Assembly (NCBI GenBank): GCA_946965045.2
Contig: OX337233.1
Location: forward strand, 992,001-1,056,000
Direction: 5' to 3'
Source of the DNA: Epithemia pelagica
Taxonomy: Eukaryota; Protista; Bacillariophyta
Length of the DNA stretch: 64,000 nt
Shown here: one piece after another, positions 9,490 through 57,289 of the stretch
How the letters are laid out: the number at the start of each line of letters is the position of its first letter
Numbering within the stretch: position 1 is the first letter of the stretch
Notes under the pieces: generated by a model
What the model saw: only the letters and a program-made list of their open reading frames with translations
Told to the model about the DNA's origin: nothing
Databases searched by the model: none
Program-made: the position numbers and the translations under genes

Positions 9490-11165
9490 TGCAGAACCAA
9501 CCATGGTACAGCCGGGGCTTGTCCTTTGTAGCCAGAGTCGAATGAAACGTGCGGAGGGTGGATTGCGTTGGTTGCATGAATTGGTTGTGCTTGAGGATCG
9601 TCCCAACAACAAGGGACAAACAGACGTGGTGTTGGGAGGAATTCGAGATGGGCCACCAATTCCGTACATGGATTGAATTTGGTAGAACGATACAAGCAGT
9701 TGACCACCCATGAACAAGAGACAAGGGGAGCATGCTGATGTGGCTTGCAACGGAGGAATTTACGTGATTGGACGATTCGATCGTGGTACGATTTGTCGAA
9801 TCCTCTCATCACGTAGACGCCTCCGTTGTAGGGAACGGATTGAAGGGTACGGTTTGGTGCAAGCACCAAGCATCTCCAAGAAGCATTGGACGATTATTAC
9901 TCGTCGAGCGTTGAATCCACCCATTACGACAATGTAGCGATTGGAAACCGCAACAGAATGATGTGCTGTTGCGGTTCTCAATCTTTACATTGTGGTAATT
10001 AGTCAACACTTGACGAGTTGCAGTCCTTCTGCCGTTGGCAGCAGTGGTGGTGGTGAGTGTTGCATCCACCCATTGCGGCAATGTATCGATTGTGAACCGC
10101 ACCAGAATGTTATGCTGTTGCTGTGCACCAGAATGTTGTGCTGTTGCGGTTCACAATCGATACATTGTGGGAATTAGTGGCAGTAACACTCGCCGAATTC
10201 CAGTCTTCCTGCCATTGGCAGTTGTGGTGGCGGATTGTATGGAATGGATTGACGGACACGGTTTGGTGCAATCACCAAGCATCGAGTGGTGCATCCACCC
10301 ATGACGACAATGTATCGATTGCGTGCGCTGTCGCGGTTCGCAATCGATTCATTGTGGTATGGGTGGATGCAACATGAGGGAATTCTCGCATTTGTCGTCG
10401 GCCGAAGCAGTGGACGACTTCCACTTGTCGAGTGTTGTACCCACCCATTACCATAATGTATCGATTGTGAACCGCAACCGAATGTTGTGCAATTGCATTC
10501 TGTTACGTTTCGCAATCGATGCATTGTGGTAATCATTGACAGCAACACTCGACGAGTTGCAGTCATCCTGCCTTTCGTGGTGATGGAGTGTCTTTGAGGG
10601 GAAACCAGTGGTGGAGAACAGTGTGAGCATCGCCAAGAAGCATTGGATGACTGACACTTGTTGAATGTTGCATTCACCCATTACAACAATGTTTCGATCG
10701 CTTTTGCGGTTCGCAATGAAGATCGAAACATTGTTGTAATGGGTGTATGCAACATGAGGGAATTATCGCGTCTGACGTCGGTTGATATCATTGATACCAG
10801 CAATCGGACTTTCATTGCTGGGCCAAGCAATTGATGTGGACAGTTGGGTGAAATCACACAGCATCTCCAAGAAGCATTGGATGACTGACACTTGTCGAGT
10901 GTTGCATCCACCCATTACAACAATGTTTCGATCGCTGTTGCGGTTCGCAATGAAAATCGATACATGGGTGTATGCAACATGAGGGAATCATCGCGTCTGA
11001 GGTCGGTTGATATCATTGATACCAGCAATCGGACTTTCATTGCTGGGCCAAGCAATTGATGTGGACAGTTGGGTGAAATCACACAGCATCTCCAAGAAAG
11101 ATTGGATGACTGACACTTGTCGAGTGTTGCATCCACCCATTACAACAATGCTTCGATCGCTCTGT
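9490..11165 (+). pseudogene. Degenerate, internally reiterated Kelch-repeat gene mosaic containing a hairpin array
   Basis: Clear DNA similarity to the open Kelch gene at 62714 (segments encoding KGQTDVVLGGIRD, ACNGGIYVIG, VDIIDTSN). It carries many frameshifts, a roughly 234-bp tandem repeat (from about 10675 and 10909) and six fold-back stems. Confidence 0.85.
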
Positions 11166-11266
11166 TTCTGGTTTGACACCATCACCAAGTTATAGAATCT
11201 ATCACAGCGAATACTTCGTGTGGATGATCAACCAGTGAGCTATTGTATTGACTACTCTGCACAGAC

Positions 11267-13965
11267 ATGTTGCGAATCTTGCGATCCACCTACAACCAAG
11301 TAGCCACGCAAGAACAAGAGCAACAGCAACAAGGAGGAGATGGAACCATAATGTCTTCCAACCAGAACAACGAGACAGCCACGGCGGCAGCAGCAACGAC
11401 TTTGTCTTCTCCAGACCCTGTAACCACTGCCACCAAGGCGGAGGTCGTTGTGGAGGAGGATGAGACTTTTGTGATTCATAGTGCTACGCCCGTGGCAACC
11501 GTTGTGACGGACCAGGAAGAAGAAGAAGGAGAAATGGTGGAACCCACAGTGGCGGCCGCCAAGTCTGCCACAACAGATCGACCCATTGTGATTCATTGCA
11601 GTGCCACACGATGGACTCTCTTTGTGCTCGTCCTGTTGGTCCTCGTTGCGACAGCCCTGATTGTACCATTGGCACTTATCAAGGGCCATTCCGGCGAGGA
11701 TAACTTTGAACTACCCTACAATCCTCCCTTCAATGAGAACGACAAGGAACATCAAGTGCCCTTGCTTTCCGAACAAGTACTTGGCGGATATGCAACTCCA
11801 GAGGAATTTGAAGCCGACTTGACCAAAGTGGCAAAATCCTATATCAATGGTGTTGTAGGACAACAACTAGGTGTGGATGCCTATTCCTCCTTTGGATTGA
11901 CGGGTATTGCGGCGATCGATATGATGGCTGACGGTGCTCCTACCATGACCATGAGTGCAACTCCTCGGACTGCGGCGGCTCCTCCTCCGAATCATAAAGA
12001 GAGCGTAGGAAATGATGTCAATGACTTTGAAACCAACAATCAGGAAGATGGAGTACACGAAGGAGATCAAGTAGTAACGGATGGAAAGATTGGTAAGAGC
12101 ATTCTATGATAGTGTGCTGGTCTTGGATACTTCTCCCCCATATCTCACTCTGTTGTACTCGTTTTACATACAGCTGTGGCGTCCTATGGTAGTTCTCTGG
12201 TTTGCTAGAATGTGACGGATGGTAAATTGTTGCTCCAACTGTCCCTGACAGATCAAGAATCCAAAGAAGAAGCACAATATATTCGCATTCACACCCTCTT
12301 ACTCCAAGAAAATCAGTTGGTGGTCGTAGTGGGAGGCGTACGACTTCATTCCCGAATTGAAACGTCACGGATTCTCAATTCGTATCGAGAAACTCGACTG
12401 CTCGTCTATGAAATTCAAACTTTTGAGGATAAACCAGGCGTTGAGCTTCGACTCCTGGAAAGCAAGGATATTCATGGGAGCTATCAATCCATTCGATCCA
12501 TTGGTACGAGTGTTCATGTCGTGACGAGCACGACGCTCGACTTTTTCTTTTTTCTCTTTGAGCCCATGGTGCGCTACCGACCCACCTTTGAGGGTTTGGA
12601 TGACGCTGCCTACACCAATCGAGTCCGAGAAGTGGCGACTCAAGAAATGATTCCCACCTTTGTCAAGCTATTGTCACAAGAACTGAGCGAATGCAACGAA
12701 TTGCCACGCATGGTACGGCTCAACCGATGGGCGACCGAAGCCACACCCAAGGCAGCTTCGGGCTTGGAACACTATCTCTACAATATGGGCTTTGCGCAAT
12801 CACTCATGAGCATTTATTCCTTTGATTTGCAAGACGTTCAATCGGGGCAAGGCAAGGCCTTGCAGTGTCTTCGATCGACGGCCACGTTCTTCCCAGCCGC
12901 GCCATGGAGTACCAAGGTGTACGCCGCCAATGACACGTTGGTAGTAGCCACCGAGGGATATGATTATCAAGCCCCCCAGAAACGCTTTGTCCGTTCCACC
13001 TTTCTTGTAGCCTATGATTTGAATGGAGCAGTCTCAACCCCCAAGGCCCTGGGCAATGTACAAGGAAACGTCATGGGTCAGTACTCCTTTCGTGTCGAGG
13101 ATTCCGTCCTACAAGTGGCCACCACAATCCAAGAGCAATGGACCTGGTGGAGACGAGAACCTGCCTGGTTGTTACGGGGGCGTCGACAACTACAAGAACG
13201 ACAAGATGTTGTGTTCACTGTCCCTAAAACCGAGAATTGGGTCATTACCATGGATTTGCAGGGCAAAAAGGGGAGAATGCAAGAAATGGATCGTCTCAAA
13301 TTGGGAAAAGAAGGGGAAGTCTTTACGACGGTGCGATTCTATAAGGACAAGGCCTATGCCGTTACCTTTCTTCGTATGGATCCCTTTTATGTTCTGGACA
13401 CGAGCGATCCATACAACCTCGCGATTGCCGGAGAACTGGACAATATCACAGGATGGAGCAGTTACCTAGAACCCATGAATGACGACAAATCAGCATGTTG
13501 GCCATTGGTCAAGAGGCGGATGAACGAGGAAGAGTCCTGGGCATGTCCATCTCTGTGTTTGATGCCCGTGCGTTGGACAATGTCCGAATTTCCGCCCGGT
13601 TTCTCATTGAAACGAGTTCCAACATTTGGTCCGATTCCGAAGGGTTGCGAAATAAGAATGCGATTCGGTTCAATCCAGAAACGGGACGGCTCATTCTTCC
13701 TCTGCGCGTGTCGGATTACTCCTCGGATCGTTATTTCCGCGGATTTCGAGTATTCATTGTCAAGGTTGACTCGATTGTCGAAGATGTACCGTGTATGGTG
13801 GACCTTTCAGACTTGAACAACAAGCCGTTTTCTTCTGCATTGGAATCCTTGGAACCACGTGCCATGATCATCCAAGGAAGTTTCATGACTACCATGGGAA
13901 GTCATGTGGTGATGAAAGATCTGGACACATGCGTAACAGATTGGCAGCTGAAACTAGGAGAGTGA
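11267..13965 (+). pseudogene. Beta-propeller domain (PF09826-like) membrane-anchored protein, disrupted
   Basis: N-terminal TM helix (WTLFVLVLLVLVATALIVPLALI) and motifs FETNNQEDGVHEGD, QYSFRVEDSVLQVATT, VRFYKDKAYAVTFLRMDPFYVLD, ITGWSSYLEP and AIRF. Intron 12093-12173. In-frame TAG at 12206-12208 and a frameshift near 13490. Confidence 0.75.
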
Positions 13966-14513
13966 ACTACACCAAAAACAATGCGCGCTCTTTTGTCATG
14001 GATGATCGTACGTTCCACATACCTCCAGAAATGTGATGATTGGACTACCAATTCCCTGCAAGAAACTGGTCCTCGCAACTGACCCCATCCTCCACATTAG
14101 GTTATAATACATAGAAAGTGTAAATTTGCTGCACAAGCTGTTCGGTTTTAGAAAGCAAGGCATTCTGAGAAACGCGAAGGCTTTCGAAGTAGAACTATCA
14201 GCAACGAGACTAAAGAAAGAAACTCGAAAGAGAATTATCCAATCAACATTATGGTATTAAGACTTCTTTCGAATGGACTTGCTCTCTCAACTCGCAATGC
14301 TACCACAGACTCCTGCAGCGACGAATCAGTTCCTCCCGACGGATATGGTTGTCCTAGGCATTACGAACGGTACGAGTCCTTGCGTGTACAAGGGTCCTAG
14401 TAAAATAGAATTGGAGATCTCGTCATTCACCACGTCTGGGACAGACGCCCACCAAAACCAAACGGGTGCTTGTGGGCGGTGGTAACACTATAACTACGAG
14501 TACACCGTTATAA

Positions 14514-17500
14514 CTACGATTTCACTCGAATGGACTTCCTCGTGCCACTGGAGGATCCCCTCTGAATTCTGCGAGCCATGGCCAAACATTCATCCAGGAG
14601 GACTCTTGTTTTCTTTGGTACATCAGTTTCTTCCGCGATTGGCTCTCCGGTAAACGGACGAATCATGTCCTTCTTAACTATACGAAGGCCTCCCATCTCA
14701 CCCATAAAGGCCACCAAAACACGGCCCAATGACGCAATCGTCTTACCCAAGTCCACGTCTTTGGTTTTACATTTCTTGGCTGGCCACCATGGCCATTCCT
14801 CCGCCTTTCTCATACAGATTTCGTCTGTAAATGTTACATCGGCCCACACCTCAGAGGGTCCAGTTTCATCTTCCTGCGTTCGACTACGTTTCTTCCCAGC
14901 GCGATTCCTAGTAGCCTCTTTTTCCCAAGTCGACATTGCATCCATGAGAGCATCTTTTCTTCCGTGATCTTTGCGAGTTTCCCTTCGGCAACGTGAGCGA
15001 ATCCAGCAGTCAACGACGAAAGTCTCGAAAAGGTCTTGCAGGATTTCACGAGCTCTATCCAATCGGACCTCGTCGCCTCCTCGCTTCCCCCGAGACAACC
15101 AGTGAGAAGTGCAGCCTCGGCACAAAGAACAGAGACAGTTTCTTCCCCTTTGCCTTCCCCACTGTCATCTTCTTCGTCAGCTTCTTCCATTTCAGGACCC
15201 TCGAAACCCCCATGTGCTTCCAACACACTTATTCCCGCTTGTCGACTCTCGCTAGCGGCATTTGGATGTAGCAGAAGTAGGGCCGCACGAAGTTCTGCAA
15301 CAACGTCTGAGGCATGGGCTTTTCTGGCCAGCGATATCGCTTTCACCAAAAGTTCGCGGACTTTAAGATGTTGTCGGGAAGATGTACTTCTGAGGCGATG
15401 GAGTTCTCTCTTCCAAGCGACATCCAGCTCACGATTCTGTGCATCTCCAGATCCGTCTGTTGACATATTTTCGTCGGCGATTTCGGCATCGCGGCTCATC
15501 ACCGCAACATTTGAAATATCGGCCACCCTCTCTTCGAGCTCCAAAAGTGGTTGCTTCAACGAGTTCGTCACAGACGTTATAGATTGAAGTCCGGCAGCTT
15601 GAGAATTAGGTGTTTCTCCCCCTCGACGCTTCTTGCCACTCGACATCACAGAGTAGGGAGAATCAGAAATACCCGCCTTCGATCCATTGTCAACCTGGTC
15701 TACATTATTCAATGCACTATACCACGAATGAACAGATGTCTCAACCTTTGTGGTCCATGCGTTTCGCTTGTCCTCTGGCCAGGGGGCGACATCCTCGCAA
15801 GCTTCTTCCACGGAGAGTAATTGCGAAACGAGGATCCCAACAATTCCGGAGCCATCAATATTTCCAGACGGAACGAGATTGCTACACGGAAGATGCGAAA
15901 TTGGTCGGCTGGAAGCATGCTTCTCTCGTGATCTTCTTGTTTCCCTTCGATCAATGCCTGTGTCGAAAGAGCGCAGTACCGTCAAGCCAGTCATATCATC
16001 AGTCGATGAAACAGACACAGAAGGTGCGGGTTGCTTCTCAAACTTATCAAGTTCCGATTGTATTCGGGAAAGTTCGTCTTCTGCTTGGTGAGCCAGTCGA
16101 CCGCTGCGTCTATCTTTTTCGTCACATTTCACTTTTGCTACTTCAAGTCTTTTGTAAAGTGCCTCTTTTTCACGTCGGCGGCTTGATTTTTCAGCTTCGT
16201 CTTTCACATCGTCGTGCAAGTATCGTCGCAACGACTGCTGGCCACCTGCGGGGCCCAGCATGGTTTCGTAGAGATCCTGCTCCCGTTTGCCACGGATATC
16301 AAGACTGAGAGTAAACGAATCAAACAAGGATGATGTTTCAATGACATGCCAAGAGCGACGGTGAAATTGGAACTCTTCCGGAACTGCGAGCTCGGTGGTA
16401 TTTGAAGGGTTGCGTAGTTCCTCTACATACAAAACTTCGGGGTCACGGCGAAAGCAGTAAAGGGCGTTGTGGTTTCGATCGTATCCAACTGGTTCAGTTC
16501 GTGCTACAAGTTGACGAATTCCCTTTTCGTAGGCATCATTGGCTTTTTGTTGCATTCGTAACGCCGTCTCATATTCTTTCTTTGTTGCGGTTGGTTTTGG
16601 AGCTCCTGAGACCTCAGTCGCACCGTTTGTACCGTTGCTTTTGCTTGCCTCGTTGGTATCTTTGTCTCCAGAACCCGAAGTTTCTTGCGGCTTTTTTGGT
16701 TTCGCCGGACCTTCATATGCAAGTTTCACTTTTCGAAACTTTGCATCCGCAGCCTTTTTGGCTTTCAACAACTCGTACATTTTGTCCTCACGAAACGCAA
16801 TTTTCTCCGCCATCCCTGGGTAAAATGCTAGTAAATCATCCGTGAGGGCTCGGAGAAGAGCAAACAACTCCTCTGCTGTGAGTGACCATGCCTCCATTCT
16901 ACCGAGTTTTTCATGAGCACGATACAAAACGCTTCGAAAATCCCCTAGATAAGCACCGTATGCATCGGGGAGAGGAAACGGATCCCTGCCACGCGCTTCT
17001 ACGTTGTCATTTGTTTTTGTGGGTGCTGGTGTCATTGGAATGATAGGTTCATCAATTCGGCCAAACAGGTAGGAAAGATCCGTGTTGAGGGGAGGTAAGA
17101 CTGCCGGATCTCTGCTTGATTCTGTACTATAAAACCGTTCGACCGCATCCATGTAAAGATGACACACGTCAGGCCAACTTCCTGGCGTAAGAGCAGGCAA
17201 AAGGTACTTGTTCAGTTCGAATTGCAACAGCTTTTGAGGGTCTTTTCCGAGAGAGGAAGAGCCAGTCTTTCCATCCTCAGGCGCTCGGCACAAGAGTTGC
17301 AAACACGTGACAAATAAATGCGAAATCAGAGGAGGCACCAGTCGGCTTTTCCTGGCATTCCCATTCAAGAGTTCTTCCGTGGAGTAAATCAGATTAGACA
17401 GGGTAAATTCGGGCACAATCAATGACGAACCGGGTTCCTCAACAGACTTGCCGCCTTGTCCCCGTTTTCGTTTAGTCGTGGGGAGAATTTGCTCTGTGGA

Positions 17501-18055
17501 GTCCGTATCTCCAGTGAAATGCACGTCCCCTCGAAAAAAGTAGTACACCTGGAGCAAATCAGAGACCAGTCCATGGCTGCCATGTGCCAGGGCGTCTGAT
17601 TTGCTGTATCGTAGGACATGATCGGATGTTCTGCCCTGACGGCCCGGATCGTTGAGAGGCAGAACCATTTGCCAGAAATAAGGTACTGTCGGACGGGGCA
17701 TGACGTCTGCAGGTGGTTTCACTCCCAATTCCTTATCCTCCTAATGTAACTTGGTGTCTTCCATTGGAAAACGCCGTTTCCGAATACGATCCAGGCGCTC
17801 CTTTTCTTTTCTCTCAGCTTCTTCTTTCTTGAATAGCTGCTGTTCTTTCTTTTGCATTTGAGAACGTACTTTCTGATACTCCTCCGAACTTACGGTCTTC
17901 TCCAGATCGCGAAGCTTTTCTTTGTTGTACTTCACCAATTCCTTGTACGTTTTGGGTACACGCTTCACTTCTTCGTTGGGGCCTTTGTCTCCTCCATCAC
18001 TCTTCTTTGCTCCATTAGATGAGCACCAGATGATCCAAGATCCAAAAAAGGGATA
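14514..18055 (-). pseudogene. DDT/WHIM/WSD + PWWP chromatin protein, 5'-truncated, with in-frame stop and a copy-specific frameshift
   Basis: DDT-like DLLQVYYFF...EFTLSNL, WHIM1 LTAEELFALLRALTDDLL, WSD RTEPVGYDRNHNALYCF and PWWP EWPWWPAKKC. In-frame TAG at 17741-17743. One A is missing near 14955 relative to the other copy. No ATG upstream of the open frame. Confidence 0.75.
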
Positions 18056-18205
18056 CTAAATGAGGTCTGGCTGTCAACCGACCGGCATTGTCTGTCACAA
18101 TTCACCATTCACAATATCACAACAGATCACAACGATCCTCATCGCGTGTGGCCATGTCACTTCTCTCCAAATTGAAAGGCCATCGCCGACGCAAGCAAGG
18201 ATAGC

Positions 18206-19087
18206 ATGCCTAGAGTCGAAGGAAAGCCGAAAGAACAGCGGCAGCACGGTAGTTTGGGGGACAAAGTGTCTTCACATGATAAGTTGCCCCAAAGGAATCG
18301 AGGCCGACATGGAGCTCGAAACAACAACAAAACGAAAGATTTTGTAAAATGGCTTCAACATACATTTCCTCAAGTATTTTCAAACAACTCAAACGATAGC
18401 GACTGTCCTCCAATCCTTGACGTGGCTGGAGGTGGTAAAGGAGAATTAGCCACACGTCTGGCTTGGTGCCTCCAACGTCGTGTCATTATTGTTGATCCTC
18501 GACCCACCGACGTGGTTGTATGTCTTCAGAAACATGTAATCCCCCAACTTCCGAAAAAGTGGCAAGCTCGGGCGACTTTGCACATGGAAGAAGCGGAGAG
18601 TACTGGTACTAAGCCTTTTCAAAGGATGGAACAATTGGTGCAACAGCACCAGTTGTACTTTACAAGTGAAAGCACTCTACCAGGGATGAAAGCAAAACCA
18701 AATCTTATTTCTGCAATTGAAGAAAGCTGTTTGATCGTTGGAATGCATGCTGACAGTGCTACGGAAGCTATTGTTGACGCCGCTTTGCACTACAAAAAGC
18801 CCTTTGTTGTCGTACCCTGCTGCGTTTTCCCTAATATATTCAACTTTCGCACGGTTCTTGTGGAAGAGTCTGAAGAGGGTGAAAAGTTCTTCCCAATTTT
18901 GAGGTCGAAGGGATACACTGACGACTCAAATGAAGCAGTATCCGGATCACCAACGGCAATGCGACGGGTCAAAGTTAGATCATATGAGGAGTTCTGTGAA
19001 TACATTCTGTCGAAAGATGAGCGGTTTAATTGTTCTACACTTCCCTTTCAAGGCCGAAACTTGGCCATATGGTGGGATGGTTGTTGA
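18206..19087 (+). CDS. Class I SAM-dependent methyltransferase-like protein
   Basis: Motif I-like ILDVAGGGKGEL, VDPRP, and VGMHADSATEAIVDAAL...KPFVVVPCCVFP. The 293-aa ORF is intact and has an identical protein in the second arm. Confidence 0.65.
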   Translation: MPRVEGKPKEQRQHGSLGDKVSSHDKLPQRNRGRHGARNNNKTKDFVKWLQHTFPQVFSNNSNDSDCPPILDVAGGGKGELATRLAWCLQRRVIIVDPRPTDVVVCLQKHVIPQLPKKWQARATLHMEEAESTGTKPFQRMEQLVQQHQLYFTSESTLPGMKAKPNLISAIEESCLIVGMHADSATEAIVDAALHYKKPFVVVPCCVFPNIFNFRTVLVEESEEGEKFFPILRSKGYTDDSNEAVSGSPTAMRRVKVRSYEEFCEYILSKDERFNCSTLPFQGRNLAIWWDGC

Positions 19088-19370
19088 CACAGCGAATGGT
19101 CTTCCGGTAAACATGGACGATCACCTCCTGTCCGACCAACCGTCGCTATCGCTGCAAACTGCAAAAGTCACCAGAGTATCCAAAGTAGCTTCTGCGAATC
19201 ATGTCTAACATGTCTTGTTCTTCGCTGCCTGCGGGGACCTCATGGGACTTCAGTTGCCTTGATAGGGATCTAGGAATGCCTTAGAAAGCGAATCTTCATT
19301 GCAGTAAAGAGTAGTGCCTTGTAGGGACGTTTGGTTATTTGAACACTCAAGGGAATTGAGCATCGCTGTC

Positions 19371-21695
19371 CTACATACACGGCGAAGCGATGAGCGTGCT
19401 TCCTCGATAAACTTCCTTGGTCGGCATAACGAGGGTAAACACTCGTTCGTCAAAAACTTGGCCTCGAAAATGCTGATTTTCGGGTTGCAAAGGTTCCGTG
19501 CCTGCGACCTGATAATTGATGATGGCAAAACTGGAGTCTCCAATATTGTAGTAGACGTCACCGTCAGTATTTGGATAGAATCGTGAAATGTGCTCATCAA
19601 GACTCCTCCTATCCGTTGCATTATTGGCTGAAGTGAGAACACACTCAATATAACTATCGATTGTTGAGTTGAAGTAGAGGTCTGGCTTTCTTGCTGCAGT
19701 CCCCGCATTGATGAGCTTGGGGTTGAACAGTCGAGTGTCGAGTTGTTTAACTTTGGAGAGGCCAAGCAAGAGCTCAAACGTCATAGCGTCTTCGATTGGA
19801 CCTCCATGAGGTCCATACTGGTCCCAGTTAAGCTTTGGAAGGGTGTGAGAAAGCAGTTGCTGCACACCAGCAATGCCATGGTTCAGCTTGGTAGCCAACA
19901 AAGTTCCTTTTCCTCCTTGATGCGACACGAAATTCTCAAAGAGAAATTGTGAAACGATCATGCCATTGCTATCGCAAAATCCTTTCTTTCGAAGATCAGC
20001 GACAGCACGATCATCGGGGTCTCTGTAGAGTAATGGGCGAACGTCGGTAGCAGTAACATCCGGCAGGATGCGTTGAACCATTTCTTGGAATGCCTGTTGA
20101 CCTCGAAAGTCGTTCGACTCAAAATATCTGATCACCTCCTCCACCGAGAAGCCTTCGTTTTTCATCTTCGGAACAAGATGCTCTGCAAGCCACATTAATG
20201 GGTAGATGTGTCCACCAACATGCGAGCGGATGAATTGAAGAAGCTTTTCAATCTCAGCTCCTGTTGCAGCCGTGGTGTTGGACGCAAAATAGTCTGTTAT
20301 CCCCTCCTCAACAAGCATATCTTCGGCAACAAAAAGCCGATCAGTTGCAATTGATTTCTTGAACGACCCACTTATTGTTTGATAGTGGGGAACCCCAGCA
20401 CCGATTGTCGTGAGACGGTGATTTTTTGTATTCTTCAAAAGCACGGTAAATATGTCCGAGTCAACATTGGCTTGTGTCTCGTCGACCAGAATGTACGCTT
20501 CTTGTTTCACCGCTGCCATTCTCCTAATCCATTCATTCACATCTAGTTGCTGAAACGATGTTGCGTTTTCAAAGAAAAAAACTGTTTTGCCATTGCTGAC
20601 CAGCAGCTCTCCAATCTGGTTCAGCACCGTGCTTTTCCCTGCACCCTTGCACCCGCTAATGTGCACAGACTTCTTCGGGGAGGCGTATTGGATTATTTCC
20701 TCAAGAAGATCACGCCGCTGTACAACAAGAGGTCCATATCCAACATCTTCGAACGTTTCGTTGGTCTGCTGCGGCGTGAAAGCGTAGATAGATTCCTTGG
20801 CTTTTGCCATTTGTAACGATTTTCGTCTCTTGTTTCGTTCCTTTTCCTTCCAAGAGGCGGTTACCTTGTAGCTGCATCGGACCTTTTCAAAACGTCCCTG
20901 TGCTGTACCGGTCTTAATCGCCTGGTTGATACAATGTTTGAAATGCTTGGAATCCTCCAAATGATCGTACTCTGCCAAAAGCCACTTCTTAATGGCAGGA
21001 ATGCTGCTACCGGTCCGATCCTTCAGGGCCACAATGGCCTCTTGCACTAGTTGTGCATAGGTTTTGCCATTGCTTCCAATGCTCTGCCGCTTTCCCCCGC
21101 TAGAAACAGAAGGTTGTGGAGTCGGTGGACTTTTGGGTGCCTCCTTATCACCCGAACCACTCTTTTCTGCCACGGCCACAGCAGCGGTAGCAGCATTCTT
21201 GGACGAATTATCTTCTGCGGATTGATTGGCGTCAGCACTAGCATGTGGTGGCGCCTTGGAAGCAGATTTCCTTTTCTTTTTATCGGGACGAGAAAAAGTC
21301 GGAAGCCACTCGAAGGACGACTTAACTTTGGGGCTGCGTCCAGACTTGCGAGAAGCCGGTGTCTGCGGAGAATAAAGACAGAGCATCAGACCATTGGAGA
21401 CAAACAATATACCAAACATGTCTACAACCAATGCAAAAGCTGATCATGCGTTCCCTCTGTCACAAGGAGAGCTTCCCGACATGGTAGTTGGGAGAAAGAA
21501 CGTATAGGCATTGCCTCAATCAACAAGGAGCAACCGATTCGTCACTTCAAAAGTGTGTGGCCTCCCCCGCGGCGGCGAACCGAAACTACCACACACACTA
21601 CGGAGGCCACGAAGTGACGATCGTTGGACAGAGTTTCGTCCCACCAGGACAGATATTCGACTTACCTGAGATGCTTCTTTCGATTTCGATGACAT
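19371..21695 (-). CDS. Chimeric gene: linker-histone H15 domain fused in frame to a Crinkler-like P-loop NTPase + restriction-endonuclease-fold domain; exons 21695-21666 and 21362-19371
   Basis: Exon 1 encodes MSSKSKEASQ then gtaagt; the acceptor is ...ttctccgcag at 21363. H15 globular domain: TYAQLVQEAIVALKDRTGSSIPAIKKW...RFEKVRCSYKV. The fusion point at 20794/20795 is the duplication breakpoint. Downstream motifs are ISGCKGAGKS, ILVDE and PDLYFNS...IEC...EHISRF. The spliced product is about 673 aa with no stops. Confidence 0.8.
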
Positions 21696-22413
21696 TTCTA
21701 GTAGTTCACAATGGACCGATATCCTTGATGTCTTCTGGACTTTCTTCTTCGAATGACACAACTATCTATGATCCAAACGCAATGGACGTCACGCTCGTCT
21801 TCATTCTCGCTCTGTGATGCTTTGGAAAAAGATTGTGGCAATGTTTTTGCGCAAGTCGAAAAGCGCGGGGTTTTGGTTGCCTACTCTCTTTTATGCAGTC
21901 ATTTATCAGTATAACGATTAGTGTATCCAAGTATTTAATCGTTACTCGTGCGGCGCGAGCGCGGATCGTCTACAAATGCGACTGCCTTTGGGGGGGTTGT
22001 GGGATTGGCATTCGTGCAAACTTTCTGTGAGCAATGACAACCAAGCGTGACATCAAAAGAACTTTGATATTATAATAATGGAATGTTTTATTTTGGCCCT
22101 CTTGGAAGTATCGACTATTGCCACAGCATAGCTATGTGTGGTCACAGTTCACAGGGCGGCTTTTGCGACAAGCTTCTCACAATGGTTTTGTTTGAGCGTT
22201 GTCGACCTGTGATAAGACCAAAAGGCACGAGAGCAGGAATGCAAGGCACAAGCATGACGTAAAGATATTGCGATTAGATCAACACAATTGTGGAACAGAG
22301 AAAAAGTGATTTGGATTTTGAGAATTGAGATCAAATTTAGTTGGGTGTTAGTCAGATGTTGACGCACCGAAAGAGCATGAAGATCCTGCCCAGTTTCCTT
22401 ACTTTTCCACAAA

Positions 22414-28590: not shown

Positions 28591-28916
28591 TCAGCCACTC
28601 GTTCGCTTTCTCCACCATCCCTTTACCCCCCCCTAGCGGGGGTGGTTTTGAGGTTGTAGTTTCTGTGAACCACCCCCATACCTTTTTCCTGGCTCCAGTC
28701 GGCTGGCATATCTCATTCCTTCCACCGCGATAACAACACGACAATCAAACTTTGTCGTTGCTGGTGACCTCCTACGGCCACCCCATCATGATCCGACCAT
28801 CACATGCTTCATATCGGTACCATGGCAGTGCATTGTGAGGGGCACAGTGCATGCGGGCCATTCTAGGAAATGTCCAATACAGTGACGCTGTAATACGGCA
28901 CAATAGGAGACAATGA

Positions 28917-29192
28917 TGTTGGATCACTAGATTGGCCCAAATGGGGTCTCCTGTGCACAGAAGTAATACAGTTGTAAGCGTAGATGAAAGGTTTGCAAAA
29001 TGTTCAATCTTAAAAGAGTGAGAGTTACGACTAGAGTAATGTCCAAGATGGGAGTTGTTGTTGTGCCAGTTGTGATCGTAATCGTCCAAGATCTAGGTGA
29101 GCTATAACCGCCTCCCATGCGGTTTCTATCCCAAAGATCATATGTGCGACCGACTCATGACATGAAGAGCGATTCAATTCTTGATTCCAACA
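28917..29192 (-). repeat. 3' LTR of Copia element 1
   Basis: tgttggatcactag...gattccaaca; preceded on the element strand by a short purine tract aggcaggg. Confidence 0.95.
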
Positions 29193-29506
29193 CCCTGCCT
29201 AATTGTGTCGCTCGAATGTCATTGATGTCATAAATTTGATATTCTCATGTTTGTCGTGTGTGGTGAAGATTTCATATTCTGTGAGTTGTGCCAATGTGAG
29301 AAGAAGATACCCTGCCTGATTTGGATGATGTTTGAATGCGATGTAAGTGATTGTTTGATGTTGTTGTTGTTGTTGATTTGTTTTGTTTCTTTGATTCTTG
29401 ATATTCTGATGATTTGTTGTTCGTTGTTGATATGGGCATTATGGGTTCTGTCGTGTGTTTGATGATGGCGGTTTCACTATGGTGTGGTGCGGATGATTGG
29501 GCTTGG

Positions 29507-32500
29507 TCAATTGGATGGTGCTTGTCGAAGAAAGCATTGAATCCAATAGGGAATTGGACCTTGGTGAGCGATCAGGGCGGTTTCGGATCCGACAATGGGT
29601 TCAACGTGAGCGCCGTGCTCGTTCATGGCCATCGAAGAAGGATCATCGTCAGCGGTGGAACTGGGATCAATGTCAGAACAATAGACAAGGGAATGGCGCT
29701 TGAAGTCAGGACCAGAAAGATTCTTGGTGAAGAGGTCTGCGCTATTGTCAGGTGAGTGAACCCAAATGGTGTGAATCAATCCATCTTCTTTCATCTCACG
29801 GAGAAAATGCCACTTGACGTCGATATGGCGTGTGCGTCCTCCAACACTCCATGAATGTGTCAAAGCCAGTGCTCCTTTGCAGTCCATTTGGAGGATCATC
29901 GGTTTCTTCACGGTAAGGCCCATTTGTTCGATAACACGCATTCCAAGAAGCATTCGCTGACCCGTTTCCACTGCTGCTACGATTTCTGCTTCGCTGACTG
30001 ACAACGTGACGCAATCCTGCATTCGACTCGATTCGGAGATTGGAGCATCTTGGAGAAAGACGGAAATGCCAGACACGCTGTGCCGCTTCTCAGGATCCTT
30101 GGCAAAGTCTGAGTCGCTGACACCACGAATCTCGAATTCGAAACCATCGCGAGATCCATCCCAACAACCAACCGGACGCAGAGTCTTGCTGCGAGTCGAC
30201 GTGTCCATGCAGAAACGCATGACACGGTACATGGCCTTCAAATGATTCGTGGTAGCCTGCTTCATAAACTTGGACAATTCACGGACGGAATTCAGAATGT
30301 CAGGCCTTGTCCACTTCATCAAATGCAACAATTTTCCAACTCCACTGCGATAGAGAGACTGCTTGGTACTGTCCAGATTGGGAGTGCCATCGTCCTTGCG
30401 AAGAACCTCACCAGGTGCTGCCGGTGTGGAATAGGGCTGCGGTGCATGAGGGACAGAAAACTCGTCGGTGAAACTCCGGAGTAAAACCGGCTGAGTGAAC
30501 TTGCACGAGCGGGCTTCACGGTCGATATCGACCTTGCATCCAATGTATTCGGTGAGAACACCACAATCATCACAGTCAAAGTGTTCCTTCATGGCGGCCT
30601 TTGAATGTAACACGCCTGCCTCCGATCCACAGATCAAGAAATCGTCGACCCAAGACAACCAGATGACGAGGCCATAAACGGTCCACGCAAAGTACAGACA
30701 GGGATCAGCACGGTTCCGAAGGAATCCAATCAACTGCATGACTTCCTGCACTTTGTTCCAAAAGGCACGAGCTGCCTGTTTAGTACCGTAGAGTGTCTTG
30801 CCCAAGAGAATCAACCAACCTGGTGGATACTTGGATTCCATTCCTTTGGGAATGGTCATCCACATCTTTCTGTCTTTTTCAAAACCACCCAACAAGAAAG
30901 CACCCTTGACATCCATCACATGAACGACCCAATTCGCGAGAATAATCAGCACAAAGATGATCATGATGGTCATTTCAGATGCTACGGGAGCGAAAGTGGC
31001 GTGGCTGTCGTAATGCTCACCGTCAACTTGTTCGTAACCACGGGCATTCAATCGAGCACGAAAGGTCCCATTGGCCTTCTTTTTCATTGCCCAGACGTTG
31101 CTGAGGATCTTGGCGTCAGCAGGAACATCAACTGGAGAGCAAGGGATGAAGACACCGTTGTCAATCATCCGCTGATAGTCCTTCTCAATAGACTCTAACC
31201 ATTGGTCACGCTCAGGGCCATTAATAGCTTCCTCATACTTCAGAACATGTAGTTCCTTGGTATTCTGGATGCCACCTCCCAAACCGGCTCCAACCATAGC
31301 ACATTCTTTGGCCAAGTCTGTGGAATTTGCGCTATAGCCTGATGGGACACTGTCGACAGGAAACTTGGGAGCCACATAATCTGGATCAATGTCGGCTTGA
31401 ATGAAGGCACCACTGATATCAGAAAGGGGATAATCGACGGAAACTTCTTGAAATCCGGAGCGAATGTCAGTGACTTGGGGTTCAGGGACGTTGTCTTGAT
31501 CGTCATGGTGATGACTAGAGTCGCTAAAGTCAGAATCTTCGTGACCAAGAGAAGACATAGTATGGTAGTAATTTTGTTCGGCGCGACTGAGAGATAATTG
31601 CTGGAAATTGATGCCAGCACATGCATATTCCTCGATCAATCGTCTTGGTGGTCGAATGTGTCGTCCTGTGCGAGTGACTTGCTCGCGACGAGGAGTTGCA
31701 GATGTGAGGACACTAACATTATCGTCGGCATCAGTCGCTTGATCGATTGTCTCCACGGTTGGACGTTCAATTTCCATGGGTTCATGTGCAATTGCTTCGG
31801 GTTCGTCCTTGGAGTCTGGTTGGGGATTTTCCGGATTCTCGTCGGGGATCATTTCGATAAATGGAGCAGCGTCATCAATTAAGGGCAAGTCATCGCAATC
31901 TGCATAAGTACTTGGATCTACGACTGGGCTGACCATTAGATGAGGTACCGAAGGAGGAGGAACAAAATACATGCGTCGAAGCCAAACGACATCACGAGTC
32001 AAATAGATCATTTTGGTTGTAGGATTGAACATGCGATAAACATCGCCAGCATGATCTTTACAATAGCCCACGAATAGACAGTGAGCACCTCTGTCGTTGA
32101 GCTTCTTCGAAGTGTCCGTTGAAATCTTGACGGTTCCAGCTTCGCCCCATGTACGAAGGTGATGGGCAAACTTCGGCAATTGTCCACACCAATGCTCACG
32201 TGTCTGAGAGACACCATCAATCTTGATTACAATCAGACCGTCCAACAATGTTGCAGTGTCGAAGGCAGTCGTCCACAGAAGGTTTCGATACTCCAAAGGT
32301 AGGTTAGCTCGATGCATCATAGCTCGTCCTCGCATAGCAATGGTAGAGATGCTAACTTCCGCTAGGGAGTTTTGCTGGGGAGTATTACGCGCGGTGAATT
32401 CGAACTCGATTCCCAACTTCCATGCGACTGACTGTGCTCGTGATTGAAGTAAGATGTTCTCGCCGGCGTTGTCAAGGCGGACATGTGTTACACCCAATCC

Positions 32501-33868
32501 ATTAGTAGCCCAACGTTGAAACAATTTGCAGACGGGTTCGACCATTGCATTCTTCGAGGAATGGAAAGAGGAGAATTTCAATTGGGTCTTTCCGTGCACA
32601 ATCATGCACCACTGGTACTTCTTGGGATACGGCATCGATGGTGTGCGTCGAACCGAACTCATGTCAAGATACACACGATTCACGGTGGACTCCTCGCTTG
32701 GATCATATTCGTCGTCAAGTTTGGATTTGGATTTGGATCGAGGAAAGTTCTTGCGACGTGCTTTCCCAGCTGCACAAGCAGCGCATTGATCCATGGTGGT
32801 GGTTTCAAGAGTCATGCCAAGGTGTTCAACTATCGATTTGAGTTGATGTTGGCCGATATGTCCGAGACGATCATGAGCTTGCTGTAGGGACAAAATGGGG
32901 CGTTTCTTCGGTGGCATGTTGGTGACAGCGCCGACAATTTCGTGTGGAGAGCTTGAAGGTTGACGTCGTAAGTAAAGGCAAAAGATCATTCCTTCTGGTG
33001 TGGGAATTACAATATCGAACGTTACACTGACATTGTCTTTGCTGATGACGATGGCTTCAGATGAACCGGACAGATTCCAGCCTTGCTTGAGCATTTTAGA
33101 GATACTGAAAAGGTTGAAAGCTGCTGACGGTAATAAATTCACTCCAGTGAGTCTCGCTGGTCCGACTTCTTGTCCGTGCTTGTCATAGCAGAGTCCGGGT
33201 AATTCACCAATCAACGAGGGAGTCTCCGTTGTGTCATTTGCCATGACAAGGCCAACTGGATCGACGGGCTTGACGAGATTGATCATGCCTTCAGCATGGC
33301 TGGTCACGTGCTGAGTAGCACCAGTATCAGCAATCCAAATGTTGGGATCACGCAACAAATGAAGGTCTGGTGGAAATTCGATTCCGCTGAGCAATGCTTC
33401 AACTCGCGGACCAGAGTTGGATTGATTGGTCGTATTGGACGCAACAACAGTCGCAATATCAGGTGTGGGAGCAATTTGGACTGGAGGTGCAGACTGTGTT
33501 GGAGGGTGTTGGAGCTTGTGGTGCTTGTGGTGCTGGTTGTCGACGGCTAGTCCAATTCGGAGGGCGCAAATGTGCGTTCTGAGGATTCTCCCAACAGCGA
33601 TTGGTTGAATGACCGTAAACCTTACAGTCTTCGCAGTATGGACGTGGTCGATTGGGATCGTACGGACGTTGATACTGTCCACCACCATGTGTTGGCGGAC
33701 AATATGATTGCTGTGGTGTAGCAAGAGCAGTGCCTTGATTCTGTTGGTTCTGTTGTTGTTGGCACAAAAGGCATTGGTAGTACCCATGGCCTGGTTCCTG
33801 ACAGAAGTTGCATACGACTTGAGGATTCGGAGGTTCACCAGAGCCAACAGCTTGGCAAACAGGGACAT
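29507..33868 (-). CDS. pol: Copia pol: protease, GAG-pre-integrase, integrase, reverse transcriptase, RNase H
   Basis: Protease WIADTGATQH; HDRLGH...CAAC; integrase YLD...RLDNAGE...NSLAE; RT RARLNARG, MDVKGAFL, LYGTKQAA, DPCLY, SWVDD; RNase H SDSDFA...EAE...MDC...HID...ADLFTK. The functional pol portion starts near 33500. Confidence 0.95.
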   Translation of the reverse strand: MSLFAKLLALVNLRILKSYATSVRNQAMGTTNAFCANNNRTNRIKALLLLHHSNHIVRQHMVVDSINVRTIPIDHVHTAKTVRFTVIQPIAVGRILRTHICALRIGLAVDNQHHKHHKLQHPPTQSAPPVQIAPTPDIATVVASNTTNQSNSGPRVEALLSGIEFPPDLHLLRDPNIWIADTGATQHVTSHAEGMINLVKPVDPVGLVMANDTTETPSLIGELPGLCYDKHGQEVGPARLTGVNLLPSAAFNLFSISKMLKQGWNLSGSSEAIVISKDNVSVTFDIVIPTPEGMIFCLYLRRQPSSSPHEIVGAVTNMPPKKRPILSLQQAHDRLGHIGQHQLKSIVEHLGMTLETTTMDQCAACAAGKARRKNFPRSKSKSKLDDEYDPSEESTVNRVYLDMSSVRRTPSMPYPKKYQWCMIVHGKTQLKFSSFHSSKNAMVEPVCKLFQRWATNGLGVTHVRLDNAGENILLQSRAQSVAWKLGIEFEFTARNTPQQNSLAEVSISTIAMRGRAMMHRANLPLEYRNLLWTTAFDTATLLDGLIVIKIDGVSQTREHWCGQLPKFAHHLRTWGEAGTVKISTDTSKKLNDRGAHCLFVGYCKDHAGDVYRMFNPTTKMIYLTRDVVWLRRMYFVPPPSVPHLMVSPVVDPSTYADCDDLPLIDDAAPFIEMIPDENPENPQPDSKDEPEAIAHEPMEIERPTVETIDQATDADDNVSVLTSATPRREQVTRTGRHIRPPRRLIEEYACAGINFQQLSLSRAEQNYYHTMSSLGHEDSDFSDSSHHHDDQDNVPEPQVTDIRSGFQEVSVDYPLSDISGAFIQADIDPDYVAPKFPVDSVPSGYSANSTDLAKECAMVGAGLGGGIQNTKELHVLKYEEAINGPERDQWLESIEKDYQRMIDNGVFIPCSPVDVPADAKILSNVWAMKKKANGTFRARLNARGYEQVDGEHYDSHATFAPVASEMTIMIIFVLIILANWVVHVMDVKGAFLLGGFEKDRKMWMTIPKGMESKYPPGWLILLGKTLYGTKQAARAFWNKVQEVMQLIGFLRNRADPCLYFAWTVYGLVIWLSWVDDFLICGSEAGVLHSKAAMKEHFDCDDCGVLTEYIGCKVDIDREARSCKFTQPVLLRSFTDEFSVPHAPQPYSTPAAPGEVLRKDDGTPNLDSTKQSLYRSGVGKLLHLMKWTRPDILNSVRELSKFMKQATTNHLKAMYRVMRFCMDTSTRSKTLRPVGCWDGSRDGFEFEIRGVSDSDFAKDPEKRHSVSGISVFLQDAPISESSRMQDCVTLSVSEAEIVAAVETGQRMLLGMRVIEQMGLTVKKPMILQMDCKGALALTHSWSVGGRTRHIDVKWHFLREMKEDGLIHTIWVHSPDNSADLFTKNLSGPDFKRHSLVYCSDIDPSSTADDDPSSMAMNEHGAHVEPIVGSETALIAHQGPIPYWIQCFLRQAPSN

Positions 33869-34598
33869 TCTTGACAGCAGGAGTCACCTGAAGCGACAAT
33901 CCACCACTGTCGATGCTCGATTCGGTCACATCTTCACCGTCGTCATCTTCATCATGATGCAAGTTCCATTGAGTCATCATTGCATCGATCAAGTCATCGG
34001 CAGTGACTTGACTTCCTTTCGCACGTTGTTCAGCAGCAACAATCGTGCTATAGATCGGAGCAGCCTTCTCGATGACAATGGCGACAAGATCGTCGTCTCC
34101 CAATTCATGACTGTGTCTGTTTTCAATCTGTGAAATCTTCTTACAAAGAATCTTGGGGTTCATGGTGTCCGTCATATTGATCTTGTTGATGTCTTGCCGA
34201 ATTCGCGTTTTGGCCGCGATATTCTCACTTGTATAATTGCGAAGCAACCCCTTGATAATGATGTGCGCTTGTCCTCCAGGCCAATCGCTTGTAATGGACT
34301 TCATGACGAGCTTGAGGTCGTCATCGGCTTGGAGAGCCATACTCAAACACGATACCGCCATTGCATTTCGATGTAATGCCTTCTTCTGTTTCTTTCCTGA
34401 ATCGGTGGTATCATCAATGACTGCGTCTTCTGTTCCCGGCAGATCAGGATCAGGAGTATCAGACATAGCTTGGATAAAGTTATATACGCGTGCATGCAAA
34501 CGAAAGCGCATCCACCAAATGGGATAGTCGGCCTTTTTGCCTGAGAAGGATGGAACCTTGACTGCCGTTGCTGTCTTGTCTCCGTTTGTGGTTTCCAT
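33459..34598 (-). CDS. gag: Copia gag with two CCHC zinc knuckles
   Basis: VPSFSGKKADYPIWWMRF, CNFCQEPGHGYYQC and CEDCKVYGHSTNRC. It is in a different frame from pol. Confidence 0.92.
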   Translation of the reverse strand: METTNGDKTATAVKVPSFSGKKADYPIWWMRFRLHARVYNFIQAMSDTPDPDLPGTEDAVIDDTTDSGKKQKKALHRNAMAVSCLSMALQADDDLKLVMKSITSDWPGGQAHIIIKGLLRNYTSENIAAKTRIRQDINKINMTDTMNPKILCKKISQIENRHSHELGDDDLVAIVIEKAAPIYSTIVAAEQRAKGSQVTADDLIDAMMTQWNLHHDEDDDGEDVTESSIDSGGLSLQVTPAVKNVPVCQAVGSGEPPNPQVVCNFCQEPGHGYYQCLLCQQQQNQQNQGTALATPQQSYCPPTHGGGQYQRPYDPNRPRPYCEDCKVYGHSTNRCWENPQNAHLRPPNWTSRRQPAPQAPQAPTPSNTVCTSSPNCSHT

Positions 34599-34824
34599 GA
34601 TGATGAGATTGATAGATGATTTGGAGTTAGACAAGATGGATAACAACACAACAATACACGATCAACGATCCCAAACCTTTGCGGTAATGGTCGTTCTGTC
34701 CCGATTTTGATTCAACAATCCAAGGTTTCGACTCAGTTCCTTGATTCTTCTTGTTCCCGTGAGCTTCGTTTCTCTCTCTCTTGTAACAAAGGACCAATAG
34801 AGCAACCGCCGATACTAGCTAGTG

Positions 34825-35100
34825 TGTTGGATCACTAGATTGGCCCAAATGGGGTCTCCTGTGCACAGAAGTAATACAGTTGTAAGCGTAGATGAAAGGT
34901 TTGCAAAATGTTCAATCTTAAAAGAGTGAGAGTTACGACTAGAGTAATGTCCAAGATGGGAGTTGTTGTTGTGCCAGTTGTGATCGTAATCGTCCAAGAT
35001 CTAGGTGAGCTATTACCGCCTCCCATGCGGTTTCTATCCCAAAGATCATATGTGCGACCGACTCATGACATGAAGAGCGATTCAATTCTTGATTCCAACA
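34825..35100 (-). repeat. 5' LTR of Copia element 1
   Basis: Identical to 28917-29192 except gctatTacc versus gctatAacc. Confidence 0.95.
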
Positions 35101-35777
35101 CATGATGGCGTGAACATACATTAGAGTTGCTGTTTTGCTATCAATACACTGTGTAGCTACTACTGTGATGTGTATTGTGTACCAATAGGTGTCCAAACAA
35201 TGTAAGATAAGAGCCATATAGTCCCTTTGAGTTGCTTCGTTCGAAATGGCAAGACGTCGCTTCCGTACCTGTGCCACGAGGCATGGCGCCTATGAGTCTG
35301 ATGCATAATAGCCTTAACCTTTAAATTTTGGTGATGCCGATGCATCCTACACTATTGGTTTGAGGTCTATGACTGGGAAGACAGGTTTGAAGAGTCCAAA
35401 TAGGTGCACAACAACCTGTGCAACACCATGGTCCGTGTTGTCATCGTGGTGGAGGAAATGAGATATGCCGGCCGACTGGAAACAGGTTATTTTTGGCAAA
35501 TAGGTATGGGGGTGGCTCAGAGAAATTACACCCTATAAGCCACCCCCGCTAGGGGGTAACCATCTCTTCCCTTTCGCTCACAAAACAGACACCATTCAGA
35601 ATTGTGGATATTGATTGCTGCAAAGAGTCAAAACTCTGTGACACGAAACCATCATCCCTTGTCCTATTTTGTTGCTTCAGACCATACCCAGTCATCATTC
35701 ATCCTTCTCGTGAGACGATCGACATCAACCACATTGCTTCATAAAATTGAAACTTGGTCATCAGCCATACATACAAG

Positions 35778-37328: not shown

Positions 37329-37611
37329 GACAGCGATGCTCAATTCCCTTGAGTGTTCAAATAACCAAACGTCCCTACAAGGCACTACTCTTTACTGCAA
37401 TGAAGATTCGCTTTCTAAGGCATTCCTAGATCCCTATCAAGGCAACTGAAGTCCCATGAGGTCCCCGCAGGCAGCGAAGAACAAGACATGTTAGACATGA
37501 TTCGCAGAAGCTACTTTGGATACTCTGGTGACTTTTGCAGTTTGCAGCGATAGCGACGGTTGGTCGGACAGGAGGTGATCGTCCATGTTTACCGGAAGAC
37601 CATTCGCTGTG

Positions 37612-38493: not shown

Positions 38494-38643
38494 GCTATCC
38501 TTGCTTGCGTCGGCGATGGCCTTTCAATTTGGAGAGAAGTGACATGGCCACACGAGATGAGGATCGTTGTGATCTGTTGTGATATTGTGAATGGTGAATT
38601 GTGACAGACAATGCCGGTCGGTTGACAGCCAGACCTCATTTAG

Positions 38644-45432: not shown

Positions 45433-45533
45433 GTCTGTGCAGAGTAGTCAATACAATAGCTCACTGGTTGATCATCCACACGAAGTATTCGCTGTGATAG
45501 ATTCTATAACTTGGTGATGGTGTCAAACCAGAA

Positions 45534-56900: not shown

Positions 56901-57289
56901 GAACACTCGACGTCTTGCCTTTGGTGGTGGAGTGTCTTTGGAGGGGCCTGGAGGAGGAGAGGGTGATTGATGGTGAAGCAAACGCATGGACCCTCTATTG
57001 GGGTGTGTGGCGTTGCACCATATGTTGTGTTGTTCTTCTTAAGAGTGGTCTATAAAACAGAAGAATAGACTTAAGTGATAACTCTATCTAGGATCGTGGA
57101 CCGATCGATCAAACGCATGTACCTAATCTCCACTTTGCACTTTATAAAAAGTGCGAGTTCAAGGGAATGGTCCTGGCATGGAAGGACTTTCCCATGAACG
57201 GCAGCAACATCGAGCGGATGACACCGTAGATTCCTTTAAGCATGCCATCTCCCTGTCAAAAACATCCAAAGTGAGGATAGGCGACACCC

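Follow-up and report, generated by a model that had tools for sequence, protein, structure and literature searches.

A recently formed fusion of a linker-histone H15 domain to a predicted NTPase-nuclease in the diatom Epithemia pelagica, with both donors still readable

We analyzed a 64,000-nucleotide (nt) stretch of DNA from the diatom Epithemia pelagica (GenBank assembly GCA_946965045.2, contig OX337233.1, positions 992,001 to 1,056,000 of the forward strand), here called the window and numbered from its first letter; it belongs to contig ctg1334l of European Nucleotide Archive assembly ERZ21939226. On its minus strand lies a fusion gene in which a linker-histone H15 domain is joined in frame to a P-loop nucleoside triphosphatase (NTPase) and a putative nuclease domain. 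The gene is real and recently formed, and both of its donors, the empty site and the junctions can still be read. From 5' to 3', it consists of an upstream region that was duplicated along with an H15 gene copy (21696 to 22016; putative promoter and 5' untranslated region), a first exon of 10 codons (21666 to 21695; MSSKSKEASQ), a 303-nt GT..AG intron with intact splice sites (21363 to 21665), 189 exon 2 codons derived from a copy of an H15-WSD-PWWP gene (20795 to 21362), and 474 NTPase-nuclease codons (19371 to 20794) that lack the first 8 to 9 codons of the ancestral gene. Exons 1 and 2 join in frame across the intron as read from the sequence, and the list of open reading frames (ORFs) gives an ORF of 686 codons at 19371 to 21431. 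The H15-derived part of exon 2 encodes the basic tract RPDKKKRKS, the H15 winged helix (20877 to 21065), and the start of a basic linker. Searches against Pfam matched Linker_histone (PF00538) to residues 123 to 185 of the fusion protein (61 bits against a cut-off of 22.4; 1.3e-16) and gave nSTAND_NTPase5 as the best P-loop NTPase family, at 32.6 bits against a cut-off of 34. On the basis of Pfam, AlphaFold models, and structural matches, the NTPase core was placed at about 20460 to 20711 and a domain with a restriction-endonuclease (REase) fold at about 19374 to 19802. Homology breaks exactly at 20794/20795 with the frame kept (...KAK-E/SIYAF), and the fusion departs from the intact H15-WSD-PWWP protein right after ...LQMAKAK.

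The H15 donor was found because contigs of an empty form run from the H15 part into sequence that is present in the window behind position 18019. A 964-amino-acid (aa) ORF further along the strand behind 18019 has 80 relatives, mostly of 1,200 to 1,500 aa, which carry PF00538 and WSD (PF15613) and often PWWP (PF00855); H15-WSD(-PWWP) orthologues were found in Phaeodactylum tricornutum, Fistulifera solaris, Seminavis robusta, and Epithemia. Two intact 1,376-aa copies (P0151 and P0152), each with H15, WSD, and PWWP, lie on ctg1357l of the assembly that contains the window contig. When the window was aligned to one of the two ctg1357l loci (L006), positions 22016 to 20795 matched at 96.1% identity and were followed directly by positions 18018 to 11161 at 97.8%, with nothing between. 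This alignment bears out the prediction that the fusion inherited the upstream region, first exon, and intron of an H15 gene; the sequence duplicated upstream of the gene copy amounts to 321 nt. The empty site is L006 10625/10626, which equals window 20795/18018, and no base of the H15 gene was lost or gained there. The "H15 gene" of the window is thus a spare copy, 96 to 98% identical, of a conserved diatom chromatin gene of about 1,376 aa. Two other views of the donor were tried and rejected. H15-NTPase does not qualify as an ancestral architecture, since among 60 relatives the combination of PF00538 with PF25199 occurred only in the two haplotigs of this genome and the conserved form is the intact H15-WSD-PWWP protein. 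A search for an H15 parent of 104 to 331 aa gave only a 52% relative, because the length filter hid the real 1,376-aa donor. The two intact genes lie head to head in a large inverted pair of their own (L006, ctg1357l 1414031 to 1438161; L007, ctg1357l 1360581 to 1384711), whose arms extend over at least 24 kb, are 98.96% identical, and share the same neighbors (Ank, globin, Na/H exchanger, beta-propeller, and KNTC1-like genes); the pair may be a real palindrome or two haplotypes joined.

The part of the H15-WSD-PWWP copy that the insertion cut off is also still present. The original prediction held that the 3' remainder of the H15 gene was not recognizable in the window, but it starts at 18018 on the minus strand, directly behind the insert, extends to 14514, and aligns at 97.8% identity to L006 from 10626 onward. 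The remainder occurs again, from 38681 on the plus strand, in an inverted copy described below, where 38681 to 45538 aligns to L006 likewise. In the frame of the intact gene, the remainder contains a stop codon at 17741 to 17743, found in both copies of the window haplotype, and the copy next to the fusion has a 1-nt deletion at 14959; on the second haplotig, a 1-nt insertion is found at another place. The orphaned WSD-PWWP remainder is thus decaying. The stop codon in its WSD part is shared by both copies of one haplotype only.

The sequence that interrupts the H15 gene copy is a 2,776-nt insert (18019 to 20794, minus strand) that is absent from the intact H15 gene and 98.96% identical to positions 10024 to 12791 of a third locus, L003, on ctg1354l. 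L003 and the window share only these 2.78 kb, i.e., exactly the insert. The insert holds the NTPase gene from its ninth or tenth codon onward together with a convergent 293-aa methyltransferase-like gene (18206 to 19087, plus strand), which has a weak Methyltransf_32 match (E = 9e-4) and belongs to a diatom family in Atlas. The donor and the H15 gene have GG in common at the 5' joint, a 2-nt microhomology, and the 3' joint contains 1 filler base, T. Microhomology and filler together would be the signature of a fragment captured at a break by end joining or short-microhomology repair. Removal of the insert by splicing was considered as an explanation of the empty form and rejected, as the ends of such an intron would be AA..AT and the "empty" contigs carry paralogue alleles.

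The donor gene on ctg1354l encodes P0064 (482 aa), the fifth member of a cluster of near-identical proteins. Its start, M-E-TAAPSLE-SIYAF, is the same in relatives from other samples (P0002 and P0062), and DNA homology of L003 to one of these two covers the start codon; the consensus of 39 aligned family members begins about 10 residues before the conserved core. Because the P0064 start recurs in both relatives and agrees with the consensus start, we take the ctg1354l form, which has no presequence, as ancestral. This removes the basis for the earlier suggestion that the fusion replaced a parental presequence and redirected the protein away from an organelle, as neither the ancestral gene nor most of the 38 aligned homologues have one. 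The 293-aa gene adjoins the NTPase gene in L003 and does not do so at the paralogues L008 and L009. A restriction-modification-like pair, in which the nuclease and the 293-aa gene move together, was therefore rejected: there is no such neighbor at L008 (same genome), L009 (Nitzschia inconspicua), or L005 (a TARA scaffold, about 660 nt of flank), and the methyltransferase match is weak. On that TARA metagenome scaffold, L005 10274 to 11865 is 91.5% identical at the DNA level to L003 9986 to 11568 over the NTPase gene; the identity extends 15 nt upstream of the start codon and 119 nt downstream of the stop codon, beyond which the neighbors are unrelated. The NTPase gene seems to change place as a compact unit. 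On the second haplotig, a 4.3-kb insertion (L001 13419 to 17680, at window 18005/18007) lies some 12 nt beyond the captured insert on its 3' side and encodes a 1,086-aa ORF without a Pfam family.

The insert and about 8 kb of outer flank (arm A, 9957 to 20794) are repeated in inverted orientation in the window (arm B, 35905 to 46744). Over 10.8 kb, the arms are 99.77% rather than 100% identical, with 21 mismatches and 3 gaps, and the repeat is longer and less exact than it looks at first. At its outer end, arm A holds a complete hairpin with a 9-nt stem; arm B follows this hairpin through the first stem and the loop, where homology stops and unrelated sequence begins. The outer ends of the duplication (9950 to 9975 and 46735 to 46745) lie inside an array of repeats of about 225 nt, and related repeats occur at 45502 to 46073 and 56278 to 63283. 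Arm B shares with arm A both the filler T and the H15 3' remainder. Since these could be assembled only inside the H15 gene copy, i.e., in arm A, and since the hairpin is complete only there, we conclude that arm A was the template for arm B and that copying ran outward from the insert. At its inner end, arm B created a sister chimera (35778 to 37328, plus strand), which starts at the ATG at 35778, as predicted, and consists of 42 novel N-terminal codons from the flank followed by the same NTPase-REase body from 35905 onward. The flank that supplied the 42 codons is 346 nt of unique sequence, and between haplotigs the codons differ by a 33-nt (11-codon) indel; the N terminus is Arg-rich, with no acidic residue for 36 positions. 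Compared with the sequence upstream of the gene in L003, this flank yielded only a 13-mer at a similar distance (E = 3.4, not significant). In the window haplotype, the sister copy has a W332R change at a family-invariant tryptophan.

The second haplotig, ctg1292l, is 99.1 to 99.4% identical to the window across the region, with single-nucleotide polymorphisms (SNPs) of its own. It has the 4.3-kb insertion in arm A and another insertion in the spacer between the arms, and it lacks a 6.9-kb transposon nest that the window carries there, a terminal inverted repeat (TIR) element holding a copia-type long terminal repeat (LTR) retrotransposon (28629 to 35558). The spacer was originally about 7.4 kb and was enlarged in the window by this nest. 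Both chimeras occur on ctg1292l, the fusion as P0065 (682 aa) and the sister copy as P0063 (505 aa); with the fusion and the inverted copy on both haplotigs, the description of the event as "caught in the act" was an overstatement. We compared the variant sites of the insert across its four copies (window 18019 to 20794, window 35905 to 38680, L001, and L002) and found that 11 group the arms by haplotype and 0 by locus. This indicates gene conversion from arm to arm.

To the region 19000 to 22400 we compared Logan contigs of four runs of one study; such contigs drop rare variants, and transcript ends and levels are not visible in them. At 20794 to 20796, the run contigs branch into four forms, namely, the fusion junction, the arm B junction, the junction of the third locus (L003), and the empty form. 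A 2,715-nt contig of run X4 spans 19000 to 20835, has the fusion-type base at 20805, and bridges the fusion junction by 41 nt, so that, besides the two separately assembled haplotigs that carry the chimeric ORF with its in-frame junction, a run contig crosses the junction. Run X4 is probably RNA, judging from its small total size, from a contig that is spliced, and from an intergenic gap at zero depth. The predicted splice of 21665 to 21363 was seen in run X4, in a contig whose joint skips 21363 to 21665, but that contig carries alleles of the intact paralogues (L006/L007) and not those of the fusion. Apart from the contig with the fusion-type base at 20805, all variant bases in run contigs over the H15 part match L006/L007, and the empty-site contigs in X1, X2, and X4 likewise carry paralogue alleles. 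Both the spliced and the empty-site contigs therefore come from the intact paralogue, and they confirm the exon-intron structure rather than expression of the fusion. The fusion may be transcribed from the H15 promoter.

To examine the enzyme body, we used an AlphaFold model of P0064 built with 39 sequences (predicted local distance difference test score [pLDDT], 89). The first two-thirds of the model match STAND/AAA+ NTPases (NLRC4, NRC4, NOD2, and ClpC) as well as MalT, AfsR, NACHT, and nSTAND clusters. nSTAND_NTPase5 (PF25199) was the best Pfam family for 37 of 39 relatives (E ≤ 1e-3; best, 1.6e-9); the fusion, the sister copy, and the ancestral copy scored 32.6, 33.1, and 31.8 bits, respectively, against the cut-off of 34. 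The last 173 residues were also modeled alone (pLDDT, 92.7). In an exhaustive structural alignment (VIA-align) of this C-terminal model, about three-quarters of the best 50 matches were PD-(D/E)xK nucleases of the REase fold, headed by CinB (Z = 7.2), CdiA-CT (6.4), BglII (6.0), and BstYI (5.8) and followed by MunI, EcoRII, EcoRV, FokI, Card1, Can2, and others. Foldseek searches with the C-terminal domain gave nothing below an E value of 0.1; its sequence gave nothing below 0.5 against solved structures and no family in Pfam. Residues invariant in the family within this domain are a P-D, an E 12 residues later in E-C-(V/A), two E residues in the preceding helix, one H, and one Q. The models thus predict a restriction-endonuclease-type fold, with an alpha-beta-beta-beta-alpha-beta core, behind a STAND-type NTPase, in agreement with the original prediction. 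In a language-model feature search, a "Crinkler family protein" cluster was among the nearest named clusters (score, 0.96), which we regard as a lead only, and PADLOC returned matches at the P-loop level only (PDC-S01, AbiO, and Nhi). Neither the fusion nor the sister copy matched the Crinkler header (PF20147) in Pfam, and none of the 39 aligned relatives did. The NTPase-REase body is Crinkler-like in architecture and is not a Crinkler; it represents a headerless multicopy family in diatoms, most members of which have about 10 residues before the NTPase core.

The above establishes how the gene is built, which donors it came from, where the empty site and the junctions lie, which way the copying ran, that both haplotigs carry it, and which folds it encodes. 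We consider it likely that this young fusion arose by DNA-level accidents in four steps. First, an 8.1-kb segment holding the chromatin gene (H15, WSD, and PWWP; 1,376 aa) and its downstream neighbors would have been duplicated from ctg1357l to the window locus; the copies are now 2 to 4% apart. Second, this spare copy would have broken in its basic linker, directly behind the H15 domain, and the break would have been sealed by a 2,776-nt fragment copied from ctg1354l, with the joint falling in frame by chance. Third, the insert and 8 kb of outer flank would have been copied in inverted orientation to a site then about 7.4 kb away, with copying ending in the hairpin loop, and the second chimera at 35778 would have arisen with an N terminus taken from flanking DNA. 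Fourth, gene conversion from arm to arm would have kept the arms alike within each haplotype while the WSD-PWWP remainder decayed.

Several observations count against parts of this account. Evidence for expression that is specific to the fusion amounts to 41 nt of one X4 contig, and all other X4 contigs over the H15 part carry paralogue alleles. The REase-fold matches have Z values of 5 to 7.2, under the tool's own caution line of 8, and because these values are middling, the assignment depends on the consistency of the match list; in addition, the third catalytic position reads E-C-V and has no lysine. Lysine-free catalytic variants exist in nucleases of the BglII/BstYI type. Among five young NTPase copies, we counted 14 nonsynonymous versus 6 synonymous variable sites, about 0.7 of the neutral ratio; by these counts, purifying selection on the fusion is not evident, and constraint on the young copies is relaxed, close to neutral. 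Finally, the inner end of arm B coincides within 1 to 3 nt with the 5' end of the captured insert, so that an order in which the insertion came first and the inverted copy second needs either a coincidence or a single compound event. Candidate explanations for the shared inner end are compound template switching, two captures of the same fragment followed by break-induced copying between the inserts, and chance.

One such compound event is the rival that survives best. According to this explanation, arm B arose directly, by microhomology-mediated template switching during replication-repair, from L003 and from an H15 copy still intact at that time, and arm A received the insert later from arm B. 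It accounts for why arm B has its inner end where the insert has its 5' end, and it is consistent with the short microhomologies (GG/AGG), with the filler base, and with copying having stopped in the hairpin loop. Transfer of the insert from arm B to arm A would, however, need homology on both sides, and arm B has none to the 5' part of the H15 gene; moreover, the insertion in arm A is clean, with the H15 gene intact to the base on either side. We therefore regard this route as unlikely.

The four-step history treats the NTPase-REase gene as a passive passenger. It could instead be a self-spreading cassette, given that three copies in the genome share a 5' end within 1 to 3 nt, that homology between organisms reaches no further than 15 nt upstream of the start codon and 119 nt downstream of the stop codon, and that family members lie in unrelated neighborhoods. 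We consider this distinctly unlikely. If the nuclease of the cassette did help to make the breaks at which copies are captured, the H15 fusion would amount to a eukaryotic selfish nuclease tethered to chromatin, and it could be functional.

The original prediction took the gene at 35778, with an organelle presequence, as the parent, its body having been placed behind the H15 exon by a single inverted duplication that swapped the "header." The near-identity of the copies over 10.8 kb with a common breakpoint agrees with this, as does the Arg-rich N terminus free of acidic residues for 36 positions. Nevertheless, arm B contains the H15 3' remainder and the same 1-nt filler, which only arm A could generate, and it ends inside a hairpin that is whole in arm A; all three features mark the 35778 gene as a copy taken from the fusion locus. 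The ancestral N terminus is short and has no presequence, and the presequence-like stretch itself varies by the 11-codon indel between haplotigs. A parent at 35778 is thus very improbable, and what was described as a header swap between two genes is better described as the capture of a 5'-truncated gene copy inside a spare H15-WSD-PWWP copy, in a family whose aligned members have no Crinkler header. It is hardly credible that the inverted repeat and the junction are an assembly artifact from misjoined haplotypes or paralogous copies, even though the arms are nearly identical and the assembly has the other large inverted pair on ctg1357l (L006/L007), since the same junction stands on two haplotigs with different SNPs, transposon insertions, and spacer lengths, the arms differ at 21 sites and 3 indels, and contigs of separate runs hold the fusion, arm B, and L003 junctions and the empty site as four distinct branches.

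Whether the fusion matters to the cell can be approached from its state of preservation. The fusion keeps the whole enzyme fold; only 8 to 9 residues were lost, and these are disordered in the model. Its ORF is open on both haplotigs, and the fusion copies have no changes at family-invariant positions. The H15 part differs from L006 at 12 positions, 9 of them synonymous and 3 nonsynonymous (dN/dS of about 0.1), and most of these differences predate the fusion. A product, if made, would be expected to be a nuclear, chromatin-tethered, NTP-regulated putative nuclease. A selected role for the fusion protein is possible, though doubtful, and the protein could just as well be a neutral by-product.

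The surroundings of the arms contain several further insertions. The TIR element in the spacer is about 745 nt long and occurs also at L006 3515 to 4259, while being absent from L007. The copia-type retrotransposon inside it (28917 to 35101) has 277-nt LTRs that are 100% identical and an RVT_2 ORF of 1,453 aa. Beyond arm B, identical 300-nt direct repeats at 48281 to 48580 and 52946 to 53245 flank a 1,139-aa ORF (49022 to 52441, minus strand); this is probably a further young LTR retrotransposon. On the second haplotig, the flank directly upstream of the 35778-type gene contains a 4.2-kb insertion (L002 5622 to 9837), whose ORFs of 747 and 368 aa gave no Pfam family.

The classical young chimeric genes, of the jingwei type, arose by DNA-level duplication and insertion, and the mechanism by which the present fusion originated is of this already known kind. 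As in those genes, both donors are identifiable, the in-frame junction arose by chance, one donor gives the promoter and 5' exons, and the unused remainder decays. Unlike them, the present case involved capture into a spare copy of the recipient gene and then amplification as an inverted repeat with gene conversion, which yielded two sister chimeras with different N termini. The H15 part has the winged-helix domain of linker histones H1/H5 (PF00538, 61 bits); its donor differs from these in being a 1,376-aa H15-WSD-PWWP protein conserved in diatoms rather than a short protein with a lysine-rich C-terminal tail.

Among Crinkler C termini, the layout that occurs most often is NTPase plus helix-turn-helix plus REase (Zhang et al. 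2016, as summarised in PMC5289972). The body described here resembles Crinkler (CR/CRN) C termini in the order of its modules (a P-loop NTPase, a helical or winged-helix part, and an REase-fold domain), a likeness at the level of fold and layout. It resembles Crinkler effectors further in that variable N-terminal parts stand on a constant enzymatic body. In contrast with those effectors, the fusion family does not have the CR header (ubiquitin-like, LxLFLAK; PF20147), the N terminus being an H15 part, a novel stretch of 42 residues, or a short one of about 10. In addition, the host is a diatom, and there was no sign of secretion, although no dedicated signal-peptide search was made. REase is also a recurrent effector domain of STAND NTPase conflict systems (Kaur et al., PMC7159879, PMC8195603; REase statement PMC8195603). 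The body is like the NTPases of these systems in that its structure resembles NLRC4, NOD2, NRC4, and MalT/AfsR-type proteins and in that PF25199 is the best family; it is unlike them in that the proteins encoded in the window score 32 to 33 bits, under the cut-off of 34, and have no sensor repeat region, and in that the family is eukaryotic and single-gene, with several paralogues per genome.

Few young chimeric genes keep every step of their origin legible. For this fusion, both donors remain intact elsewhere, the empty site is legible, the junctions retain repair signatures at the level of single bases, and a sister chimera, a leftover in decay, and a pair of haplotypes are available as well. 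It also shows that a headerless NTPase-plus-REase body in diatoms can gain N-terminal domains simply through the capture of DNA. Should the fusion be expressed and active, such a capture would have placed a putative nuclease on a nucleosome-binding domain.

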